Source: Lytechinus pictus
Lineage: Eukaryota
NCBI RefSeq assembly: GCF_037042905.1
Contig: NC_087247.1
Location: forward strand, 12,896,001 to 12,960,000
Direction of reading: 5' to 3'
DNA: 64,000 nucleotides
The notes under the pieces were generated by a model. The model was not told the DNA's origin. It did not search any database and was given only the letters and a program-made list of their open reading frames with translations. Position 1 is the stretch's first letter; every line of letters starts with the position of its first letter. The position numbers were made by a program, and so were the translations under genes. Positions 29,375-58,459 of this stretch are shown here, in pieces.

Positions 29375-30410
29375 ATGATCCATGGATGTTCGAAGATCGC
29401 ATTGCTTTTCCTTTGCTTTTTCTTTTCATCGGCCGAGGACAGAAGACATCATCCTATTTTGGATGGTAAGAAATCGCAAGTGGTTTCATACAACAAGCTT
29501 AAAAAGTTAAAAAGGTTGAAAAGAAAATATTGTAATGATTATGTTTCTAGTTTAGAGATGGGTAATTAATCATTGAGGGGTAGCCTTGTGAAGAAAGAAG
29601 GTGAAAGAAAAGGAGTAGAAGAAGAAGAAAAAAAGAAAAAAAAGAACAAGAAAAAGAAGAAGAAGAAGAAAAAGAAGAAGGAGGGGAGGATAACTGAATA
29701 GATTACATAATGAGTGAACATGATGATCCACTTTACTATGAGTTTATTTCATGAATTGATCGTCATAAATCATTAAGTTACACATGATCTAAGTAAGGGT
29801 GTAACATTGAGAGAGATCGTGTTAAATCCAATTCTTCGTAAATATCTTTACCCCAACAGAAACTTCAATTGAGCGACAACGTGGAGTCATTTCCTCATCA
29901 ACAAGTACATCTGGGGAGAAAATATCTCACTCCACAGAGATTGTGGTCAGGACTTGTATTACACGTTCTACCGTAACAACTGCTACAACAAAAGCAACAA
30001 CTGCATCAACACCCGGGACAACTGCAACTCCAATAGCAACTTCGAACGGAGAAGCAACAACGCCTTTAACTGTCATGTCAACAATCCAGAGGATAGCAAC
30101 TGCAGCTTTAGCAACATCCAGAGTAAAAAGCACTTCAGTTGCAACTGTTGCAACACCGCTCCCCACGACCAGGATATCGACCGCACCCACCACCACCACC
30201 CAAGCAACTCAGACGCAGCAGACAACAACACGACCGACAACTCCAACCATGGGCATCGTAACGACAACGGCGATTTCACCTACACAGACGCGATCTCAAA
30301 CAGCACAGGTAGCGACAACAACCACCACCACCACCGCAGCAACAACCACGCTAGTAACTACCACAAGAACAAGAGCAGGGACGACCATCCGACGGGGTGA
30401 TTTGGGATAA
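29375..30410 (+). CDS. Gene C: 213-aa secreted Thr-rich mucin-like protein
   Basis: Exon 29366-29465 (ATG at 29375; MIHGCSKIALLFLCFFFSSAEDRRHHPILD, G|gtaag) joined to exon 29860-30410 (cag|AAACTT..., ETSIERQRGVISSSTSTSGEK...TTATTKATTAST...RRGDLG*); 642 nt in frame. Upstream donor CAG|gtaaga at 28574. Confidence 0.75.
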
Positions 30411-32891: not shown

Positions 32892-33900
32892 NNNNNNNNN
32901 NNNNNNNNNNNNNNNNNNNNNNNNNNNNNNNNNNNNNNNNNNNNNNNNNNNNNNNNNNNNNNNNNNNNNNNNNNNNNNNNNNNNNNNNNNNNNNNNNNNN
33001 NNNNNNNNNNNNNNNNNNNNNNNNNNNNNNNNNNNNNNNNNNNNNNNNNNNNNNNNNNNNATGATAATGACGACGATGATGATAATGATGGTGAGACATG
33101 ATTATGACGTTGTTGTTAATGATTATGATGGTGATAGTGATGATGATGAAAACGATGATGATGATGATGATGATGAAGAAGATGACGACGACGATGATGG
33201 TGATGATGATGAATGATGTTGATGATGATGATGATTATGATGCTGATGATGACGACGACGATAATTTTTATTTTTCTATCTATCTATCTATCTAGTTACC
33301 TATCTGTTTATCTATCTATTCATCTATCAATCTACCTACATGTTTGTCTGACTGTCTGTCTGTCTGTCTATCTATCTTTCTGTCGACTCATTACATCTAT
33401 TAATCTATCTATCTACCTATTATCTATCTATCTATCTACATACCTATCTATCTTCTTATCTATATCTATCTAATTATCTATCTATCCATCCATCCATCCA
33501 TCCATCCATCCATCCATCCATCCATCTATCTATCTATCTATCTATATGTTTGTCTGTCTGACTGTCTGTCTGTGACAGTCTTGTCTATCTATCTTTCTGT
33601 CGACTCATTACATCTATTAATCTATCTATCTACCTATTATCTATCTATCTATCTACATACCTATCTATCTTCTTANNNNNNNNNNNNNNNNNNNNNNNNN
33701 NNNNNNNNNNNNNNNNNNNNNNNNNNNNNNNNNNNNNNNNNNNNNNNNNNNNNNNNNNNNNNNNNNNNNNNNNNNNNNNNNNNNNNNNNNNNNNNNNNNN
33801 NNNNNNNNNNNNNNNNNNNNNNNNNNNNNNNNNNNNNNNNNNNNNNNNNNNNNNNNNNCTGTCTGTGACAGTCTTGTCTATCTATCTTTCTGTCGACTCA
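32892..33900. repeat. (GAT)n and (TCTA/TCCA)n microsatellites flanked by two assembly gaps
   Basis: N runs at 32892-33060 and 33676-33858; GAT/GAC tract 33061-33260; TCTA/TCCA tract 33277-33675. Confidence 0.95.
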
Positions 33901-36168: not shown

Positions 36169-39100
36169 ATGAAGGTCGCTATCGTTGCCACTATCCTCAT
36201 CAGCATCTCCATCGCACTTCATTCATCAGGTGAGATCATTTTGAAAAGTCGCCCCAAATATAGGGGTCGTTTCACGAAGCATTTGTCACTGCCGTTATCA
36301 GCTACTGAAACCCTACGATCTGATTAGCTAATAACAATTTGTTATTGACGAAGTGCTTCATGAAAGGCTCGACTTTTTGCAAAGGCTATGATTTCGACGT
36401 AGGTCAACGGCTAGTACGGGTGGAATACTTAGCTTTGATTAGCTGATTGAATGTCTGACTTTGTGAACTTTCACAAGTTCGCCGATTGACAAGTTGCCAT
36501 TGGTTAAAAGAAACTAATGATAATGATAGAGGCACATGGAATCCATATGAACAAAACATAATATGTATCATATATAATTTGAAGAAAAGAGCAATGTTTT
36601 CTATGTAGCAATGTTTTCCCGGCGCGGTGTTTTGCCAGGAGCCCCGCATTTAGCCTTGTGCACCTTCGTGGATTTAGGGGCAAACTGGGCTCTAACCCCC
36701 CCCCCCCCCACCCCCTTCATCCCTTCCTATTTAGCCCCCGAGATGGGGGTAGACTGGCATTAGGTTAGGAAATTTGTTTGCATCCTTCGATGTTTGCTTT
36801 GGAAAGTTCCCGTTATCTAACATGGACAAAACTGGACTGTCCTCAGGGTTATGTATAAAAATAATATGCGGTACACTCCCCCCCCCCCTTATAGTGCCAC
36901 TTTTGGAAACGACATAGTGCCATTTATTTCCTCTACACAGACAAGAAGCAAATATTGATTGTGTCAACGAAAAAAAAAATTAATAATAATGTTTCAGTGC
37001 GATCTTATAGTGCCACTTTTTGGAAACGACATAGTGCCATTTATTTCCTCTACACAGACAAGAAGCAAATATTGATTGTGTCAACGAAAAAAAAATAATA
37101 ATGTTTCAGTGCGATCTTTGAGGTAAGACGTAAGTAATTATTATCACTATCTTGTGATTTATACCTTCCAGCCAACCCCATTGATTTGGGATGCAGTATC
37201 GCGAGGAACGTCGTCGAGTGCTATCTCTCGCAGCTCTGCCCTCACTTCAAGCCTGAGGACATCCTCGACTGCGACAAGGAGCTGATGACGAGCACGATGC
37301 CGGTGGTCAACGACTACATGGTATCCCATTATCTTAGGGAAGCGCACAAAGATAAATTCTGTGACGGTGACGGTCAGCGGTTCGGATCAGCCTGCGCCGT
37401 GCTCGATCACGTTTGCTTAGGGAGGGATACATTTGACATCGATTATTGCGGAGGTGAGTCACTAATGTAGTGATTATTAATGGATAGATGGAATGATTAA
37501 CTGACTGATTGACTGACTGAATGATTGGTTGATAGATGGATGGTTCATGATTTTTGCCTCGTCATAAAAACATAACAATGGACTTCATAAAACCAATGGG
37601 CTTGAAGAGGATAACCCACAAAAGCTCATAAGCCAATCTCTAGTGGGAACAATATGGTCGGCATGGGCAGGAGTTATTACAGGGGCCATGGGCGACATTC
37701 ATGCTATTTTCTTTCAAGTGATTAAAAAAGAGAAAACGCAGAGAAAAATAAAAGATAGGGGAAGAAGAGTTTTCCATGAGGAAATAAGAGGGGAATGGTG
37801 ATAGAGAGGAATGCACCTGAATGAAAACCATTCTCTCTTTTTTTTCCGTTGATGATCAGATGATGCCAATTAATTTGCCTGTCCCGTGAAAGTGCCACTG
37901 CTATATTGCACCTGGGATTTAGTGCCGGTGTCCCATGCGCTTCATTAAAATGACTTCTTTTTTTTAAATCTAAGATTGTCAAGATTGCTATTTTCAGAGA
38001 ATTTATTGCGCTCCAACACGCATGCATGTAATTATGTTAAAAAAAAATCTTCTTCAAAAGAAATAGAAAATAGATTATTTATTTATTCTTTTTAAAAAAT
38101 AAAGAAAGAAAATGAACCGATGATTACATTTTGTTTGTTGCTCTCTGATCGAGCAGGCTTATTAGGATTTATGAATGTACATACCAAGTATAAACTAATA
38201 TCCCAACTGCTTTTAATGGATATAATTGTGTTTATCATTCAAATTAGTCGTAGACATTCTGCGGAAATCCTCTTTAAAAAGTTTTAAAAGGGCGAGTTTT
38301 TTTTCTTGGTATGATCGTGATGGTCGTCCTATTTCAGAAGATGTATTCTTTCCTGATTTCATTTTTGTGCTTTCCCCTAGCTGGTGCAATACCGGGGAGC
38401 GTTTCATGGAACGCCTTGTCCGAATGTTACTGTAGAAACTGCACTTCCCAGCCAATCAGAATCAAGTAAAGTTGTCAGATCTTACAACTTGTCAGATTAC
38501 AAATTTAGATGAAAGGGTCCCCCGGACCCTGCAAGAGCAATGAGTCTAGAAACATCATCACTTTATTATGATGATTATTATATCTTATCAGTCTGATATT
38601 TTGTCCCCCCCCCCCTCACTTCTTTATTCTTTTTGGAGTCCAACAATTGGACCTCTGATGTAAGTCGTCAAACATTTAAGGATTAATTGCAGTTTGGATT
38701 TTTTTTTTAGATTGTCAGAGTAAATGCAAGTTATGCTTGCACCACAATTACTTTATCTTTATTTTGTTTTTGTTTTTTATTAGAAACAAATCAACGATTT
38801 CGCCGCAGCGGCTCCTTCTCTGGTAGTCATTCTGGCTCACACTCGGGTCTCGTACATGTAATATATAAACAACCTGCAACCAAACCACCAACAGCCAAGC
38901 CCGAGGTAACAGAGAAGGCAACAACAGAAACTGATTGTGACACATCTGATGAAGATGCAACCACCGCAGCTACAACATCAGCTGCCACTACAACCCCAAC
39001 ACCCACAACACCAACGACACCTACCACTCCGACAACACCCACAACACCAACTACACCTACAACACCAACGACACCTACCACTCCGACAACACCAACTACA

Positions 39101-39277
39101 CCTACCACACCAACTACACCTACCACACCGACGACTCCGACTACACCAACTACTCCTACGACACCAACTACTCCTACGACACCCACTACACCTACGACAC
39201 CTACCACTCCTACAACACCAACCACACCTACAACACCGACCACACCAACAACTCCGCCGACTGAGCCAACAACATAG
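36169..39277 (+). CDS. Gene D: 278-aa secreted protein; signal peptide, 8-Cys domain, RFRR site, SGSFSGSHSGSHSG, long (TTP)n tail
   Basis: Exons 36169-36229 (cag|ATGAAG, MKVAIVATILISISIALHSS, 61 nt, G|gtgag), 37172-37453 (282 nt, phase 1/1) and 38784-39277 (ETNQRFRRSGS...TTPTTP...TEPTT*); 837 nt in frame. Upstream non-coding exon donor CAAG|gttagt at 35516. Confidence 0.88.
36888..37117. repeat. ~117-bp tandem duplication in a gene D intron
   Basis: ttatagtgccacttttggaaacgacatagtgcc...tgtttcagtgcgatct occurs twice, nearly identical. Confidence 0.9.
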
Positions 39278-39324
39278 CTAGAATTGGAAAGTGTTCCTAT
39301 TCCATAACTTGGAATAGTCAGTAT

Positions 39325-47085: not shown

Positions 47086-50000
47086 TCAAAGGGATGTTGT
47101 CATTGTTGAACTACTCACAACTTTCCACTTCTGCTTTATCTCCATGATGACATCTTGGCGATTAAGGTCAGGATGTCCGAGATGGCTAATCAGGTTGCGA
47201 AGGGTAGCATTCTTCGACATACCCCAGTCGTCAAGGAGTTTTCCACATGGGTCATAGCAATGCGGGTGTGGGGCCTCAAATTCCTTCAACATAGATATGG
47301 TGCAACCTAGTTGACCTGTTAATACGACAAATAAGAATACAAGCAAAAAAATCAATAAAAAAATGTCGATTTGCGAGATGATTATAAACAGATCACGAAT
47401 GTTTTGAATTATGAAATATTTCAAAATAAAACCCCACACGAAGGCATCAGATTCTGTTTTTTAGTTCATCAACCAATCAAGTACTTGGAATGACATAGAG
47501 CCATTTATAGAATATTTCATTAATAATACTATGTCTAATACTTGCAATCGATTAAAAATGGAGAGAAAATCTAAGGCACTTTTAAAGAAGAATTTTCTTT
47601 TGTTTAAAATACGTATATCCTCACAGAGTAAACTTATATCCTAAAGAGATGCAAAAATACCCCACACACTTTGTTCGGACAAATCTATGGTATGACAGGC
47701 CAAATCGTATTCTTGAATTTAAGTGTATGTCATTTTAATGGCATACACTGAAATTTAAGAATAAGTTTTTTTTACTTAAAAATTTATAACATTTAACTTT
47801 GTTGGGCTTTTCAATTTGAACTTCAACATAATTTTGTTAATGGTCTATATTTAACACAGTCAATGACATAAAGTTTGATCTTAATGAGGAATCCATATCA
47901 TTCCCAGCAACCATATATTATCCTTCAGTGGTTTTATGATTTGTTGTGGTTTTAAGTTTTAATCAATGCTGTTTAAGTTATTCTCCATAATATCAAATGA
48001 CAAGTTTTTGTTTGGGGTGGACTTGCCCCTTAAATATCAATGTTCTAAATAAGTCTCATTTTATTGTCTCATCCTTTCAGTAGGGCAAATAAAGATCCAT
48101 CTTTGACTCAAGATTCAATTTACATTTGTCATATGTTGTCTTAATTCACTTTTAAGTTACTTTCTTTATTTAATCCTTTCCAATCACTGTCCCTGATTGT
48201 TGCAGGGTTCAAACAAGCTGGATGAGCTTGAGCAGGAGGAAGATCAGAGTAGGAGCCTAGGGGGTGTCTTCAGACAAGATGGATCCACTCTCCAAGTTTA
48301 GCTCATATTTGCTATTTTGTATCACTTCATTGGTGAATTTTTGTTATAATTTTTACCTCAATGGTTCACTATATATTACCCCGGCTGTAATATATAGTGA
48401 ACCATTGAATAGGAAACTAGATAATTGGCGCCTCATAAATGCTAGGTATTGTTATTATTACTATTAGAGAGGAGTAGGAGGTAAAAATTATAACAAAAAT
48501 TCTCCAATGAAGTCAGGAGGAAAGTCAGAGTTGGGCTTGTCATGAGACAAAATGGATCAAATCTCTCCTTGTTTAACTCATTTTTGTTATTTTGCATCGT
48601 TTCAATAAGAGTTTATTTTCTTTCTTTACCTGCTAATCCTCTCCAGTCCCTGCCCCTGACTGTTGGTAGATTCATCTTGCTAGAAACAAGCTGAATGAGG
48701 TCAGACGGAAGGTCAGAGTAGGGTGTGTCCTCAGATAGGATCATCCCAGACGAGTCCAGTGATGGCTGCTTCTGAGATAAAAGAGTAATAAATGATGATA
48801 CTAATATCATTTTAGTGATTATGGAAAAGGACAAAGATAATGAGAAGGAGAAGGATAAAGACAAGGAAGAGGGAAAAGAAGCAAGAAGATTAAGGAAGAA
48901 GAATACAACAAAAATATGTTTATATACCATCTTCACAACAATGATAATATTACATGTATTTTTCAGGAGTGTTGATCCATGTTTAGGATTATGGAAGGGG
49001 GGCAAAAGTGAGAATTTTTTTCAGAATATTGGTGCACATCAAAGCATAATTCAGAACTTTCAGTGCAAAACGTGCCTTGTAAGATTAATTTACATGCATT
49101 TCCTTATTTTGAAACATTACCTCTTTCCCTTGGGCGACGATCCATTCTCTAACATCTCTGAACTTGAGGACATCTTCATTTCCACACCATAGAGGGCGTT
49201 CTCCAGAAACCTTAGTCAAATCAATGACATGGGAAATGGTATGGCCACTCAGCTCCTGCTGAAACTAGAGTTTAAAAAAAATAATTTCATTATCGATTTA
49301 TAACTGAGTGAGAGATCTCCTCAATCGCCCTCCCCCAAAGAAAGAAAAAAAAAATGAGTAGCAATTACTGAATATCATTAAAAATTATCACAAAGAATAC
49401 AGAAGCTCCGATGGGGACCCTCCTAGCTAGATCTCTAGATAAACTCTAAAGTTAATTTCTTTCTTGCATTAATCAAACAGAAGTGTAGATGAAGTTCAAA
49501 TATCATCTGGATCCTTAAGCAAGTTTCACGCACATCTTAAAGAAACTTGGAGTAACTTAACCCTGAGCTAAGCAAATTTAGAACATGTATTTTACTATCA
49601 TCTCTACTAGTACCACTTCTACGCCTACTACAACTACTGCTTCTTCTGCCATGATTCAAATCTTACTTCTAAGCATCACATATAAATAAAAAACAATGAA
49701 TTTGATTATCATACATCTGAAATACCATGGAAAAGAAAACATTAATTGACAAACCCAAACAACAAGAAATACCATGAGAAGAAACTGTTAAAAGCCCAGC
49801 TTCTAATTAAATTTCAGTGTCTCCTTTGACACAGATAATTGGTTGCATCTAGCAAGTAAAACTTAAAAATTATTATGGAAGTATGATTTACGATGATTTT
49901 TTTAGAACGCAAGTGTGAATAAAAATGTAGTACTTACCATGCATTTTTTATGCAAAGGACATGGTGGTCCTAAAACAAATCTGTCATCAGATTTCATCAC

Positions 50001-53000
50001 CTTTAGGATAGCACTGTTTATGTCAACCAGCACATTGCGTAAGACAAAGCCTACCTTACACCTACATTAAATAAGCAAAAAGATGGGGGAATAGTCAGCA
50101 AAACAGAAATATCTTCAAATGCACAATTATGCAATCTGGGCCAAAAATATGATAATATTGGTGACACAAATCAACATTTCCCAAACTTGTATTCAAGAGT
50201 TTCTAAATTGAAAGGCATTGTTATTGTTAAGAGATTATTCAGTAGCTCTCATGGCTGGATGCCTCCAATAGAAACCCCAATTAATTGCTCTCTGACAAAT
50301 GATGATAATGATGATAATAATAAAGCACCTTTCCTGGAGGATACAGAGAGTTGTTTAAGACATATGACATACAGTATTAAGATTAATAAAATAGGAGAGT
50401 TCCAAAAATGTTTTTAGCACGTCAAGTGAGGTAATTAATATATTGCATAAAATTCAAGGGAGTATGGTTAAAAGACATGTGGCAAGAGATTGAGAAAAAT
50501 TGCAGTCTGCCTGTTCTCTGGATATGGGAATAACAAGAAATCATGACAATTTCTCTGGGCTTTATCTATCAAGGATATGGCTAGGATAGTAAAACTTGTA
50601 TTTCATTTGTATTTTCATTTGTATAGTGCCTGATCAAGAATCATGATTAGTCTTTGAGGGTCTAAGAAAGTACGTGGAAGTGTCGACATATATATTAATT
50701 GTACTCACACTGTGATAAATTTCACCATGCAACTTCTTGGATCATCCCTCAAGTACACCGTATAATTGCCACCCATGTTGAAGTCCCAGGACGATTCCCT
50801 CAAGAACTTGAAGGTCCCACCTTTCTTGCAGGCTATTCTACCAAGCTCTATGGCAAGCTTTGATAGGAGACCATGAGGACGGTACCCCTTGAAATCTGCC
50901 AGAAGGACTCTCTCTGATGACAGGTCCCTGCAGGAAGCCGAACCACGAGGCAGCAAGGTGCTCATATGGTAGGGCACCAGGTAGAGGGCTTGTTGGGAAC
51001 TTCTCTGTGTTCTTGGACTGTCGCAGGAGAGACCATTGGGCAGCAGCATGGAGTAGTCATAGATGAGGTTGAGTTGTTGAAGACATGCGGTAAGACAAGC
51101 TGCATCGGACTCTACACCAAGGAGATGTGTTAGGAGAGTTTGGCTCAATATCGACTTGGTCCTGAGATCATTCCAGTGCTGGCGCAAGGAATGGTCTTGA
51201 CGGCTCATTTCTGGAACTTCCAGGAGATGCTGGCAGATGTGGACAAGCTCTTCAGGGTTCAGAGCCACAAAGGAATGGTGTGGTTCTTCTTTCTCATTAG
51301 CTGCAAACAGAGACGAATACTAAGTCAATAATACACATTTACAAGTATAGCTTTTCACATCTTATCAAGATTTCCTGTTTGCCATTTTAAAATGTAGAAT
51401 TGGGGACCATAATCCTATAATATGTCCATCCAAACAATCTTGGGAATTGGTGCATGTATATCATCCTGCATATCACAATGAGAATTATGCAATACATTTA
51501 TATGTTTGCCTGTATACATAGAAAATACACTTGCCACTTCAGTACATCTATCTAATCAAGAAGTATAATTCATCTAATCTAATTAAGCTTTAACCTGGTG
51601 TATCTTAAAACGCAGACAGATATGAGTTACCTTTTCATCTGGCGGAAAAAACAAAATATGATACCTGATAAGATGATGACCCCCTGATTGTGCAGGTACT
51701 CTAGGAGAGAAGTCAGTTCTTCACTGTCTGTAATCTTACATGCCCTCTTTATGCCTGATGTAAGCACGCACTTCTGCTTCTGATCTCTCAGTCCAACCAC
51801 GAAAGCCCTGTAGGACAGGAACTTCTGTGGATAGGACTTTCTGGTCAAGAACCCCTGCTCAAAGACATTCCTTGATATGTGCTCCTTCAAATTCAAGCAA
51901 GCTTCAGGAGCACAGGTACTGAGGCAGGTAGAGTAGGAAGATTTCAAAGACAATGATGGAACTTGGTCCGGTTCTTCCATCCAGTCAACCCTGTCATCTA
52001 GGTGCTGGCAATGGTTCCAGGAAGGTGACTGAGATGATGGCAGTTGGTTGGATGTTCTGCTGATCATGAAACATGGACAGTTCTTGTGGTACTGAAGCTG
52101 TCCTCCAAATGCTTCACCAAACCTCTCATGTAGCTGTGCACCAATATTGTTGACCGAGTCAGAGGTGCCAGGCAAGTACAGCCAGCTTGAAACAAGATAG
52201 ACTGGGGATTTTGAAGATGCATACGTCCTAATCTTATTCAATTGTCTTTGTAGTTCTTGCATATGCTTTTCTGTGTCAGCAAGGAATGAATGGCTTTCAA
52301 ATCCAACAATGTACATAGCATTGGATGACATGACCAACTGACTGCAATAATCAGCAAACATAGTATCTTTCACCACGACCACTTCTAACACCACACATTC
52401 TGCAGTGGTTGAAGACCCATCTACACCATTTGATCCAACATGGCGAGGTTTATTGATGGAGTTCAAGATGTCCATGATTTGGTGAGACCTGCAGGACAGA
52501 TACTCAAAGGTGCTGCCCTTTTTCTGTATCTTCACGCAACATTTTCTGCTCATAAGACCATCTTGTCTCCTGGACCAAATCCTAGGACCAACCAACTGTT
52601 CAGCAATGTCCTCTGCATTGCTACCCATGATGACCAGTCTCAAATCTGGTAGTCGTTTCATAAGCCTGTCATCATTACTAAAGGTATCGCTGATGCTGCC
52701 TTGTCTGGATGCTGTTTTCAGAGAAGACATCTCTGAATTGGTAACACTTCTCGACCGAGCACCCTTGGGTCTCTGTATGATGATAGAGACTGGACTATCT
52801 CGACTCTGCTTCTTGAAGACTTCACTTGCTGAAACTTCAGCTGTTGCCTGGAAAGTAATGAAAGTAATGAAAACTTCCCATTAGCAATAATTAACTTTGT
52901 GACGAGCTGGTCTTACATTTTTACATTTTCCAGGCAAAGCCCCTTCAGGGCACAAACGGAAAAAAAGTGAAATGAGCACCACAATATTCAAGGCCAACGT

Positions 53001-56000
53001 GGGGAGCATTGATGCACATAAATAAAGCATCAGAGGATATTGCCTTGAATGGCCTAGGGTTAATTCCAACCCTGAAGAAGAATTTAAAAGGGAAATTTAC
53101 CCTGACAAAAATTTTATTGTAAAAATAGCAGGAAAAGTAATATTGTAGAAGGTTTGAGGAAAATCCATCAAAGAAAAAAAGTTGTTAAAATTTTAATTTT
53201 TTATTTGTGACATCATATGTGAGCAGCTTTCCTACATATCGTATGGTAAAAAATCAATGTAATGTCATTTTCTCAGAAAAGTTAAAACGGTTTTGATTTT
53301 ACCATCAGTTTATCTACACATGAATCATTTCACACCCACTCCTAATAAGAAAATAAAAAAGAAGTCATCATGAACCATTTAAAAAAATTTAATGCTTTTT
53401 AAATTACATAACATATGGGGCAGCTGCTCGCTTATGACATCACAATAAAAACTTGAAAATCCAATAACTTTTATGGATTTTCCTCAAACCTTCACCAATA
53501 TATTTCATTATGTTATGCTATTTTTTTCTACAACAAACTTTTCATAAGTGTGAACTTCCCCTTTAACCATGTCTATGTAGATTAATCACATCTGAATTTT
53601 TAATACATTTTTCCAATTATTTCTTGAATATATACATGAACTAAAAACAATCTGTACAGAATAGGCAAGTCATTATTAATTTTATCCATTTTGGCATGAT
53701 GTAGACCACAGCAATCATTACATTGCATTGTTAGTGTTAGCTCTATTACTAGTTCAGTGAATTAAAGTATAAAATAATAGCAAATAGCAATAAAGATCAC
53801 TTTCCTATAATTGTCCATAAATGAATATCGTGTTGTTGTTGTTGTTTTTGTTTTATTTGCAAAAATGTGAAAGTGAAACTGTTATTAATGTATTCTTTCC
53901 TAGCATGCATTACTATAGAAGTCCAATTACATACAGCAACTATCTCTGTGACTATCAGTCTGCTCTATTTCACTTGGTAATAATTGACTCAATTATGAAC
54001 TTTGATGGTACTTCAAAATCACTTGATTTTCCATCAGGAAACAAGTAGAAATGATTAAATAGGGGTTGTGTAAAATTTGGATTCGACTTAGAGTAAGTGT
54101 TTTGGAGCTGGATTTGGTTCAATTGGGAGAAGAATATTTGTTTAATAGAAAACAACAGAAGGTTCTGGAGTTATTGATACAAAAAAAAGATATATTCGCA
54201 AAGTGAAATTACAAAATCATTGAAGAATAAAAAGTAATGGAAATATGTAAGCGTGTGACAAAATGAGTTTACACCCAATCATGTTGAAAACAAAGTATAC
54301 TGTAAATTGGTTGAAATGAAAATAAAGGCAGAGACCAAATTACAGTATGAGAAGTTTAAAGGTTTATAGAATTAAAATTAATTCAGAGAATAGAGTATAA
54401 GAGTTACAAAACTAGTGAGAAAGGTTTCATATTGAGATTAAACTTAGGTTTCAGCATAGTATTAATACATACTTGTTGGTGGATGGGTGTACCGTTGATT
54501 GATAGTACACGGTCTCCTATTTCTAGTCCACTCATCCTCACTGAAGGTCCTTTCAAAGAGGTGACCATGGCGTAGACCTCGCTTCCATCTCGGCTCTAAA
54601 TAATGATTCAATATAGAAATGATGAATCATACCAATTTACAAGAAGATTGAAGGGGGCATTCAAATATATAAATGTGAGGAATATATTGTCAATATTTTT
54701 TAAAGCTATAATGCGAATTATAAGAACGGTTATTATTATCATTATTTTTATAGTGTCAATGTCTGCTGACTATATTAAAAGCATATACACCACTTAAAAC
54801 TTTAGAACCTTTTAGGAAACACAATAATGGGGTGTTCAATTATAATAAAACCTATTTCAACAACCACCTGTACCAAAATGCTTATCTTTAAACTAATTTA
54901 AAGTTTGGGAAATTATACGTTATAAAATTTTATTAATCTTTATTCACTTTATAAAGATCTATAGACGGTTTGATAAAAAAAACATGCACAATGAGTATAT
55001 GAACAAGATAATGATCCAAGTGCATACACATGAAATTATTGCTTTATACATGAGCCGACCTTGTGTGTAATTCACATCTAGGAATTCCACCTGGAATTGC
55101 CCGAGATGAATGAAAAACTGAAGAAAATCCTCATTACTAAAAATGATCTTGTCATGGACTCGGGATGCTCTAAATACATCCCTAAATGTTTCAATTATTA
55201 AGTTTGAGAGAACTATCATGTGGAAAATTTTCACTGCCAACAATACCTTTTTTGTTCTTCTTATCTTGCGGTTAATAATTCTTCTAATAATAATTTCAAA
55301 TAGTTTTTCTTTGAAGAGCCTCATCAATAACTTTCCATAATTTTCACTGTAGGAATCGAATTCAAAGAAACATAAAATCCACTTTCAGTTTACAATCACT
55401 TCACAATCAGTACAAAACAAAGAGACTTGTAAGAAAACCACATGTCCTAGATCTATATAGATATGAGAGCAATTCAAAGGATGAATCTGTAATCTGTTTA
55501 GACATGCACAGATCAGCAATGTTTTCTATAATCGTTTCCATAGCACATTTGGTAACTATAAAATGGCCCAATTAACTGAATAAACACCATACAGGCATGA
55601 CATCACCATGAATTTGTAAATTATTTTTGCCCCAAACTTTTTTAAAGAATTGGCTTTCAGTACCGTAAAGGTAACCAAGAAAAATCTCACACCCTCTGTA
55701 TTAAAGATATTCTATTGAATGACAACCCATTCACTATATAGTACACAAAATGTAGCTAGGAGCTTTGTCATGTGATCTGTAAACAAGCCTTATAGGTCAA
55801 ATAAGGTTCCTAAAAGTCATGGAGGGTCAAGTCAACTCGCATGATCAATATGTTTGAAGCGAAGGCTTGTAAATGTGAATGTGTATTCCCAGGGCCCCGT
55901 GATATAAAAGTAAAAATCCATTGTACAAGGCACAGCCCTGCTAAGACTTTCTATATAAAAACTTGAAAGACTGGAAAAAACATGCACACATTTTTTTCAA

Positions 56001-58459
56001 CTTATTTTACAATCAATTGCAGATAAGGGAGTGGTAGATCTAGATGCTAATTGACAATATTATATTTTCATGCGAGAGATCCCTGGTACATGTATGCGAA
56101 CATGCAGTGCTGACTTTAGCAATTCACTTCATTTCGGGGAAATAGGACAAGATCGATCATGGTTTGAGGATTGAGGACTACCCAATTTCCAAGAGTAAAT
56201 GAAAGCGGTGGGGCAGGACAAATAACTATTTTGGGATGGGCATTCTCATGAAAGAAAACACAGACATCAGGATGTCTTGACGATTGTTGGGGTTCTCTTC
56301 TATGTTGAAAGTGTGGCCTAAATGGGGGATGCTGAAATAAACTGTTTCCTTAACTTAAATACTAAAAGAAAATATCTTTCTCAGCAGAAATTTAACTGCC
56401 AAAGTAAAAAGAAAACAGACTTTTTTCACCCAGTCAACCCAAGGAGTGCTGGTAACTCACCTAAGACCTCATATGCAGTATCCTGGTTTCTACTTTGGAT
56501 AACCCATAAAGTTATGGTTTTCCTGCTATGCAATTTTAAAAACCAAATGCACATATGTGCACACAGCGCTTAGAAACATTTGTATCAAGTGCTATATCAT
56601 ATATGTTGCATATTATTATTATCATATGTTGCAAAGTTAGGCAAAGGTTTTATCGTCCATGAGTGTACATAAACCCAGGATGAAAATCCAGCTGAATACC
56701 CTATTTGAATACTAATTGGTATTCAATTGGGAGGAAATGGACAGTGAAACAATGGGAGAAAGGGGTGACAATTGCCAAAATTGGTTTCAATATAGGGACT
56801 ACATAAGTGGTCTATTTTGTTTCAATTTGACCAATTGGTCAAATTGAACACCTGAATTGGGCCAAATGCACACTAAGTATATAAATGTTCATATACAGTA
56901 TATGTATAGCTGCATAAAGATAACAACATTTATGTCATCTTGATGTCATTTCTCAGTAAAGTTTCATCATGAAAAATGAAATAATTTGCCAAATGCAACA
57001 ATGTCAAACAGAAAACCATTAAAACTTTGTTTGGGGCTTTGGCACAATTTTAAGAATTCTGTTTTTTAATCATGTCTATCAAAATTTCAAAAGTACTTGG
57101 TATCCAATTAATTTATCACATTCCCTGGAATCATCCATTGAACAAATATGCAACATACACATACGTTCTGGAAATTAAAAAATACCCTATTTTTACTCTC
57201 ACAAAAGGCCAAGTTTTAATTATTCTTTTTTTTTTTAAAGTTTTTATTGGGTTTGAAATTTCAACCCTTTATTTGCTGAAAAACAAGGCCAAATTGTCTT
57301 TTAAAATAACCTTTTATTACTCATGGAGGAAAGTTTTTTTTTTAATCCTCTCCCTATTTGCACAAAACTAGGACAAATGTTGATAAGTGCACAATAAACC
57401 CTTTTTTAATTTGGATGGCAGTATCCTCTGAAAAAAAAACATTTCTGAATTTCAAGAATCATTCATGTACTAAATGTTAGTGAACTGGGTGTGGACTATG
57501 GAAAATACCCCCTTTTCCTCGAATGTTACACATTTCCAAAAAAAAATTATACATGTATGTCATCCCATCGGAAGATCAATTATTTGTGAGTTTAACTTTC
57601 AACTTCCTTGAATAAATACATTACACCACATGTTGTTTGAAATAATAACATCTCAATTTGAGAACAGTGCAATTACCTTGAAATTCTTTATTGTGAAACC
57701 AAGCTTCCCTTCCTTGTTCCACTGCACCACAAACTTCTTGGTGTCCGACCACACGACCAAGTCTGGGTGGTCAAAGGCATCCTGCAAGGGATTCTTCTTC
57801 TTCCTCCTCATCTCCTCCGAAGAGAAGCCACTGGAGTCTGGTCTCAGTTGCTGCGGGGGTAGGGATGGGGGTGATGGTGATGGGTTGCAGTCTAGGAGCG
57901 GCCGGGAGCACATCATGGTGCTGGCAGTGATCAGCTCCGAGGGTGTTTGGAGGAAACTCATGTCATTGTTCAAGCTTGCCGATAAAGAGCTGTAAGCAGA
58001 GTTTCCGCCGCTGAGTAAGGAGGAGAAACTCCCACCTTGCTGAGTCCTGTCATTTCTATACGTCTGCAAACTACCCTCTGAACTGCAGCCATCGCTTGAC
58101 ATGGTTCCTACAGCCCTGCAACTCATTTCCTTCCTCGCCCCTCTGTCCATTTCACAGTCCACAAGAACGTGACTAAGATGTTCCTCTTGGTCAAAGGCAA
58201 ACCTTCCTCCAGACCATCCGCCATAACCCTCCTTCCTTGGAGTAACACAACACTCTGAAATCTCCTCTTGCCTGTATCTCCCATTTTCTTGACCAGTCAG
58301 CTTCACATTGTTATTCAATTCCATCCTGTCAACTCTCAAGTTGGCTTGCTGACCCATAATGTTGTTCATTTGTCCTGGAGTGTACTTGCCTGTCAGCGCA
58401 CCAACCATTTGCTGAGCGTTGACAAGTTTGCCAAAATCTGCAGGTGGTATACCTCCCAT
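47086..58459 (-). CDS. ~1104-aa PDZ, degenerate Roc, COR, Death domain protein (Roco-like signalling protein)
   Basis: Eight exons with canonical, phase-compatible splice sites: 58459-57677, 54595-54473, 52847-51665, 51300-50709, 50061-49938, 49258-49121, 48771-48630, 47315-47086 (3315 nt). PDZ: GKLGFTIK...SGLEIGDRVLSING...VSIIIQR. COR: LLEYLHNQGVII..ALNPEEL, YLVPY, PHGLLSKL. Death domain: DWRGLAGQLG...KLLDDW..ATLRNLISHL..LNRQDV. Start ATG (aagATGg) follows an acceptor at 58487. Confidence 0.85.
53088..53562. mobile_element. MITE with TTAA TSD (Kolobok-type), intronic
   Basis: ttaa|aagggaaatttaccctgacaaaa ... gtgaacttcccct|ttaa; related ends at about 60720-60785 and 61680-62005. Confidence 0.7.

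Follow-up and report, generated by a model that had tools for sequence, protein, structure and literature searches.

A predicted pseudo-GTPase Roc-COR scaffold with PDZ and Death domains in the sea urchin Lytechinus pictus

Introduction

A stretch of 64,000 nucleotides from the genome of the sea urchin Lytechinus pictus (NCBI RefSeq assembly GCF_037042905.1, contig NC_087247.1, positions 12,896,001 to 12,960,000 of the forward strand), hereafter the window, contains a gene that raises the question of what a Roc-COR tandem could be kept for in a protein whose Roc domain has lost its nucleotide-binding motifs. The gene occupies positions 47086-58459 of the window on the minus strand, which are the exact limits of its coding sequence. 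An intact open reading frame (ORF) of 1106 codons runs from the ATG at 58459 to the TGA at 47086-47088 through eight coding exons, and every intron is GT-AG. The predicted domain order is a serine-rich N-terminus without a recognised domain, one PDZ domain, a pseudo-Roc domain, COR-A, COR-B and a C-terminal Death domain. The protein differs at 19 of its 1106 amino acids (98% identity) from the L. pictus database entry 'uncharacterized protein LOC129257803 isoform X1', and the gene is single-copy in the 812-Mb source genome.

A preliminary description, made from the letters of the sequence, had placed a Roco-like scaffold with an apparently dead GTPase at these same coordinates; the strings that it quoted all lie on the minus strand where it had located them. 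We put at about 0.68 the probability that this expressed gene encodes a scaffold whose Roc-COR is a nucleotide-free pseudo-GTPase and which connects a PDZ ligand to Death-domain signaling. The structural identity as a pseudo-GTPase branch of the Roco family, seen in predicted models, is highly probable, and the odds for the adaptor mechanism are close to even or somewhat below.

The middle region as a predicted Roc-COR tandem

Because the Pfam sequence models could not confirm Roc or COR, the middle region was assigned by predicted structure. An AlphaFold2 (AF2) model of the tandem was built for residues 355-1000 (646 residues) of the 98%-identical LOC129257803 protein from 15 aligned sequences, and reached a mean predicted local distance difference test score (pLDDT) of 74 and a predicted template-modelling score (pTM) of 0.79. 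In a Foldseek search of the PDB, the top 35 matches of this model are all Roc-COR tandems of Roco proteins (E 2e-17 to 1e-6), followed by small GTPases. The E-values are 2e-17 for LRRK1, 2.5e-15 for C. tepidum Roco, 9e-14 for LRRK2 and 1.5e-8 for M. barkeri Roco2, and the COR domain of the C. tepidum protein alone (3dpt) matches the tandem model with E 4e-9. Superposition by VIA-align gives Z scores of 22.4 for residues 629-1194 of LRRK1, 22.0 for M. barkeri Roco2, 21.3 for residues 1329-1867 of LRRK2 and 17 for C. tepidum Roco. The nearest clusters in the ESM Atlas include mollusc Roc-COR and Roc-COR-Death families at TM scores of 0.61-0.69, and the remaining Atlas matches listed are also Roc or COR families, several of them bacterial.

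The pseudo-Roc G domain itself lies at 52059-52661 (minus strand). Modelled alone by AF2 from the window sequence 52044-52661, the Roc-like part has a pLDDT of 80. In a Foldseek-independent search of 48,161 chains, the Roc domains of LRRK2 (Z 13.4) and LRRK1 (Z 13.2) are the top matches of this isolated domain, and all 50 matches listed are GTPase domains with Z of 10-13. On the sequence side, hhalign aligned the COR part of the family with an intact mollusc Roc-COR-Death protein over 367 columns (probability 96.3%, E 1.8e-9). A complex prediction with two copies of COR-B returned a score of 0.00, with the fold uncertain and the alignment not used.

As far as these models go, the middle region consists of a Roc-COR tandem, one that escapes sequence models. 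The preliminary description had recognised Roc-like strands and COR motifs here; predicted structure, with its matches to LRRK1, LRRK2 and Roco proteins, bears this out, whereas the Pfam sequence models do not.

At the end of COR-B the family carries a conserved set of the form Cys-x4-6-Cys ... His ... Cys (GPPCPL..C ... HVIDL ... WCG; residues 925-963, window 49181-49970). The set is present in every full-length family member and also, read by eye, in the homologue from the brachiopod Lingula. It could be a putative zinc site, and we know of no zinc site of this kind in canonical COR-B.

Loss of the nucleotide-binding motifs

The Roc-like region had been described as lacking every nucleotide-binding motif. 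At the P-loop (G1) position, 52602-52625 on the minus strand, the protein indeed reads GSNAEDIA in place of GxxxxGK[ST]. In the gapless register that takes the conserved Gly after strand beta1 as position 1, the Lys, the Ser/Thr and the second Gly have become Ile, Ala and Asp. In both AF2 models a helix begins three residues past the conserved Gly, so that the phosphate-binding loop is not modelled, and the P-loop of the pseudo-Roc appears to have been replaced by a helix.

The switch-II (G3) position was located at 52347-52382 (minus strand) by the family alignment and by the alignment to a mollusc Roc that has WDFAGQ. It holds VVVVKDTMFADY, reads VVVVKDTMF and contains no DxxG, in agreement with the reported absence of WDFxGQ. 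The segment 52173-52241 (minus strand) spans helix alpha3 and strand beta5 together with the G4 position. Its motif LNKIRTYASSKSPVYLV (LNKIRTYA...PVYLV) is the best conserved in the family and in the protein as a whole; it lies in the alpha3 helix and beta5 strand of Roc, and columns L505, K507 and I508 are invariant. The G4 position after beta5 (52176-52190, minus strand) has SSWLY against G-T-[HR]-x-D in Roc; it had been quoted earlier as SSWL in place of THxD, one residue off, which is immaterial.

None of GK[ST], DxxG and [NT]KxD is present in any of the 13 aligned echinoderm sequences, which come from urchins, stars and crinoids, and the G1, G3 and G4 motifs are also missing from the colinear Lingula homologue; the orthologues thus share the loss. 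The pseudo-Roc would accordingly be read as a G-domain fold that does not bind nucleotide, which is deduced from the missing G1, G3 and G4 motifs and the modelled helix in place of the P-loop.

It is unlikely that the Roc-like domain instead uses non-canonical residues to bind a nucleotide or some different phosphate ligand, leaving the protein a regulated switch. The G-domain fold is wholly kept and strongly constrained, as such a switch would be, and nucleotide-binding pseudo-GTPases are known in other families. Against this stand the three substitutions in G1, which lie beside another Glu, and the disappearance of the Asp and Gly of DxxG and of the Asp of G4. The replaced positions moreover vary between classes, so they form no new conserved site, and the P-loop is modelled as a helix in both models.

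PDZ and Death domains and a possible adaptor role

Pfam PDZ matches the LOC129257803 protein with 23.5 bits, barely above the cut-off of 23.2, and the Lingula homologue with 49 bits. The PDZ profile of the family matches 153 solved PDZ chains, the best with 1.7e-10, and the PDZ domain named in the preliminary description is supported by both routes. The carboxylate-binding loop is kept as GKLGF at 57695-57709 (minus strand), and this GLGF-type loop is conserved in the family as G-[KS]-[LIM]-G-[FI].

The Death domain scores 42.5 bits with Pfam on the full protein (cut-off 22.6) and 27 bits on the exon 8 piece alone. Its profile ranks p75NTR first (4e-10), then IRAK3 and MyD88 (1e-7), NRADD (4e-7) and UNC5 (6e-5), with weaker matches to RIPK1, ankyrin, PIDD and FADD. 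The domain had been called MyD88/IRAK/UNC5-like; those resemblances hold, but p75NTR is closer still. Pfam finds no kinase, leucine-rich repeat (LRR) or ankyrin region, and full-length family members give just PDZ, a weak COR-A and Death, as expected from the earlier remark that the protein has no kinase or LRR.

Beyond the Death domain, the window protein has a tail of nine residues (47089-47115) that ends in TTSL, or TTPL in the database protein. TTSL resembles a class-I PDZ ligand. The idea that it is a ligand of the protein's own PDZ domain was dropped as a family feature, since no such tail follows the Death domain in other genera.

We propose that the Roc-COR unit has given up its cycle between GTP and GDP and would act as a structural module of fixed form. 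The PDZ domain would take up the C-terminus of a partner protein, for which a membrane receptor is the most plausible candidate, and the Death domain, of the p75NTR/MyD88/IRAK type, would recruit other Death-domain proteins. Since one end would bind a tail and the other would recruit such partners, the PDZ ligand would be coupled to Death-domain signaling: a cytoplasmic scaffold would join it to a Death-domain assembly without a nucleotide switch. The protein may thus be a constitutive adaptor in innate-immune, apoptotic or neurotrophin/TNF-receptor-like Death-domain signaling. The preliminary description had suggested a receptor-tail adaptor or a dominant-negative partner; both roles are inferences.

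A version of the second role, in which the protein is chiefly a dominant-negative or regulatory partner of DAPK1, LRRK or MFHAS1 orthologues and pairs with them through COR, seems to us improbable. Roco proteins do dimerise through COR-B, as established for C. tepidum Roco and LRRK2, about six other loci in the same genome match the COR-A model, and the Roc-COR-Death order is that of DAPK1. The COR of the urchin protein, however, shares very little sequence with that of other Roco proteins (11-16% identity), and pairing through COR would leave the conserved PDZ domain and the intact Death domain unexplained.

Weighing the Roc assignment

Several observations weigh against a nucleotide-free Roc-COR scaffold. 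Pfam on the full-length LOC129257803 protein gives no Roc match and a COR-A score of 18 bits, under the cut-off of 35.3. COR-A scores stay at 18-24 bits across the family, and Pfam on the separate exon translations matched neither Roc nor COR. Run over the whole genome, the Pfam Roc model found 69 places and the COR-A model 6, none inside the window. The Roc-COR profile of the family, run against the sequences of the PDB, found no Roco chain, just a chance Bcl-2-like match with E 1.3. The models rest on shallow alignments of 11-15 sequences, and the Roc assignment is based on predicted structure, a short local resemblance and the adjoining COR. Finally, some pseudo-GTPases bind GTP in unusual ways.

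An alternative is that the middle region has no Roc ancestry at all, and that another Ras-like or flavodoxin-like alpha/beta domain precedes a COR-like region. Besides the unmatched Pfam Roc model, this reading could draw on the closeness of other GTPases: Rab, Rag and others score just 1-2 Z units under Roc, and Rab27a is the first Foldseek match of the isolated domain. The whole tandem, however, superposes on LRRK1, LRRK2 and Roco with Z of 17-22 over 430-466 residues. The alpha3-beta5 segment KIRTYASSKSPVYLV resembles the matching Roc segment of the intact mollusc Roc-COR-Death protein, and the protein-language-model neighbours of the middle region are Roc and COR-A clusters. We therefore hold a non-Roc origin to be very improbable, and a Roc-COR tandem without nucleotide remains the preferred reading of the middle region.

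Family distribution and selection

An exhaustive phmmer search of 1.84 billion representative proteins returned just 11 relatives: proteins from the urchins Lytechinus, Strongylocentrotus and Diadema, the stars Acanthaster and Asterias, the crinoids Antedon and Anneissia, the brachiopod Lingula, and three unnamed sequences. Word-indexed homologue searches returned nearly exclusively the query's own cluster and one mollusc protein, and reveal little about the range of the family, including its presence or absence among chordates, hemichordates and other lophotrochozoans. The Lingula homologue has two PDZ domains, followed by the same degenerate Roc, COR and Death domain, and is colinear with the Acanthaster protein from Roc strand beta1 through the end of the Death domain (BLASTP 8e-61). 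The family is a small, cryptic and divergent branch of Roco in the three sampled echinoderm classes and Lingula.

Because the motifs are missing in urchins, stars, crinoids and Lingula, their loss is ancient and is not a case of decay in Lytechinus. As judged from the aligned sequences, it is older than the split of the echinoderm classes, and, provided that the Lingula protein is an orthologue, it would be older than the protostome-deuterostome split. Outside dating would put the loss at least 500 million years ago.

With a strongylocentrotid mRNA as the reference, the ratio of non-synonymous to synonymous substitution rates (dN/dS; Nei-Gojobori method) comes to 0.24 over the whole gene. The regional values are 0.20 (pseudo-Roc), 0.17 (PDZ), 0.22 (COR-A), 0.28 (COR-B) and 0.22 (Death). 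Mean identity across the echinoderm phylum is likewise similar in the pseudo-Roc (0.36), PDZ (0.35) and Death (0.39) domains. Within the species, 37 variants in the RNA of other individuals comprise 16 synonymous and 21 non-synonymous changes, with the corresponding ratio for polymorphism (pN/pS) at 0.37 and a synonymous excess of p = 0.003. The pseudo-Roc is under purifying selection and is constrained like the other domains.

Decay would yield just such a loss of all catalytic motifs, but it is hardly credible that the gene is a functionless relic, whether in decay or confined to one lineage: its ORF is intact, correctly spliced and transcribed, its dN/dS is 0.2-0.24, and its architecture is preserved in three classes of echinoderms and in a brachiopod. 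So far as sequence can tell, the intact ORF, its transcription and splicing and its dN/dS also rule out a pseudogene.

The architecture had been described as one not known to be characterised, and the records agree: where names are given, they are 'uncharacterized' or, in UniRef, 'PDZ domain-containing protein'. The literature searched contains no description of a PDZ/Roc/COR/Death family and no mention of the S. purpuratus locus name, and in it the terms 'Roco' and 'pseudoGTPase' never occur together in one paper. We raise, as a tentative proposal that is somewhat less likely to be right than wrong, that this is the first natural pseudo-GTPase Roco lineage, that it forms a further animal branch of Roco which arose before the protostome-deuterostome split and survives in echinoderms and brachiopods, and that its Roc-COR is a permanent, nucleotide-free scaffold or dimeriser linking PDZ-bound receptor tails to Death-domain complexes. 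If true, it would offer a natural test of what Roc-COR does once the GTP cycle is removed.

Gene structure and expression

All features of the gene lie on the minus strand (47086-58459; 1106 amino acids with PDZ, pseudo-Roc, COR and Death in eight GT-AG exons). Exon 1 (57677-58459) encodes the serine-rich N-terminus, of which residues 1-235 have no Pfam match, and the first PDZ strands. Exon 2 (54473-54595) encodes the middle of the PDZ domain, and Pfam PDZ matches its translation. Exon 3 (51665-52847) holds the end of PDZ, a linker, the entire pseudo-Roc, a variable loop and the start of COR-A, LLEYLHNQGVIIL, at 51669-51707. The remaining COR-A and the first half of COR-B are in exon 4 (50709-51300), whose junctions are present in RNA. 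COR-B continues in exon 5 (49938-50061), with Cys 1 and Cys 2 of the conserved C..C..H..C set, and ends in exon 6 (49121-49264), where the His and Cys 4 of this set are encoded. Exon 7 (48630-48771) contains a linker and the first helices of the Death domain, matched by Pfam Death, and exon 8 (47086-47315, coding to 47089) contains the rest of this domain, a tail found only in Lytechinus (...TTSL) and the stop codon. The preliminary description was complete in its essentials; the gene further includes the two short COR-B exons, 50061-49938 and 49264-49121.

Whether the PDZ exons belong to the same transcript as the Roc, COR and Death exons is answered by RNA. Contigs of 5541 and 4641 bases, from two runs, match exons 2-6 of the window with 0 mismatches and skip four introns precisely, CT..AC on the plus strand being GT..AG on the gene strand. 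Stranded raw RNA-seq reads from two runs cover junctions 2-3, 3-4, 4-5 and 5-6 with 3 to 16 reads each, and the junction from 54473 to 52847, between exons 2 and 3, is present in both RNA contigs and in raw reads. The flanking junctions are seen in loose read ends: those at 54597 spell the end of exon 1 (junction 1-2), and those at 49121 spell the start of exon 7 (junction 6-7). A separate strongylocentrotid mRNA contig of 3303 bases contains the orthologue in one piece from PDZ to Death. In contigs and raw reads alike, the PDZ exons are spliced to the downstream exons, and the locus is a real, expressed sea-urchin gene.

The individuals used for RNA-seq differ from the window at no fewer than 37 coding positions within 49153-52715, often in all reads. 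The two raw-read runs also differ from each other in whole haplotype blocks, which fits the high polymorphism of sea urchins.

In the intron between exons 2 and 3, the depth of the RNA contigs at 53011-53583 is very high (up to thousands), with many loose ends. This segment is a dispersed repeat of approximately 380 bp, for which a first look at the genome gave 3,648 candidates; 40 scored copies are approximately 80% identical. It is an interspersed element and lies outside the gene proper.

Other features of the window

Runs of N at 32892-33060 and 33676-33858 are gaps or masked sequence. A Thr/Pro-rich, mucin-like open frame lies at 29943-30410 on the plus strand, and a long hexanucleotide-type repeat with GVV or QHQ frames at 38827-39281; both probably relate to the separately noted stretch 37172-37453 and not to the PDZ-Roc-COR-Death gene. 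An Rfam scan of the whole window gave no match. Outside the window, Pfam COR-A and Roc matches 15 kb apart on the same contig (10637643-10652213, approximately 2.2 Mb away) probably mark a canonical Roco gene.

Significance

The way in which the Roc GTPase cycle acts on proteins such as LRRK2, the Parkinson's disease protein, and DAPK1 is under debate. A motif-less Roc-COR that selection has maintained from the divergence of the echinoderm classes or earlier, as placed by outside dating, would mean that the tandem has a job independent of nucleotide, and would supply a natural 'locked' Roc-COR for structural and biochemical comparison. Echinoderms, known for their very large sets of innate-immune and Death-domain genes, would gain a conserved, single-copy gene for a PDZ-to-Death-domain adaptor, in a group where Lytechinus pictus is open to laboratory breeding and gene editing. 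As to annotation, standard Pfam models of Roc and COR-A overlook this Roco branch entirely in a genome-wide scan.

Comparison with known systems

Pseudo-GTPase domains have been described elsewhere, as pG1 and pG2 of p190RhoGAP (PMC5593906) and in AAGAB (PMC12490416). These belong to GTPase lineages unrelated to Roc, and the failure to bind nucleotide was measured for p190RhoGAP, whereas for the urchin protein it is deduced from the motifs and models. What they share with the urchin protein is a G-domain fold that is kept under selection after loss of the motifs and that acts, or here would act, as a structural or interaction module.

A review classification lists just one Death-domain group among animal Roco proteins, DAPK1, in which a kinase precedes Roc-COR (PMC6337361). 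The order of Roc, COR and C-terminal Death is common to DAPK1 and the urchin protein, and LRRs are absent in both (PMC6337361). The description of DAPK1 nevertheless sets the two apart: kinase, calmodulin-binding and ankyrin regions are all missing from the urchin protein, which carries an N-terminal PDZ domain instead and lacks G1, G3 and G4 in its Roc. Because PDZ replaces the kinase and ankyrin parts and the Roc is dead, the urchin protein is neither a DAPK1 orthologue nor a canonical Roco GTPase.

The best structural matches are LRRK1, LRRK2 and the prokaryotic Roco proteins of C. tepidum and M. barkeri, with Foldseek E of 2e-17 to 1e-8 and Z of 17-22 for the tandem, and Z of 13.4, 13.2 and 11.9 within this group for the isolated Roc-like domain. 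Identity to these proteins is 11-18%, and the urchin protein has no LRR, kinase or WD40 region. The GTP-binding motifs needed for the dimer-monomer GTPase cycle of LRRK and Roco are absent in it.

The closest sequence relative outside the family is a mollusc Roc-COR-Death protein (Mya arenaria LOC128213275; profile E 2.8e-7, hhalign probability 96% over COR), in which the domains have the same order and the sequence alignment is limited to COR. In contrast to the urchin protein, it has no PDZ domain and keeps GK[T], WDFAGQ and GTRRD. On these sequence comparisons, the mollusc Roc-COR-Death proteins appear to be the nearest active relatives found for the urchin family.

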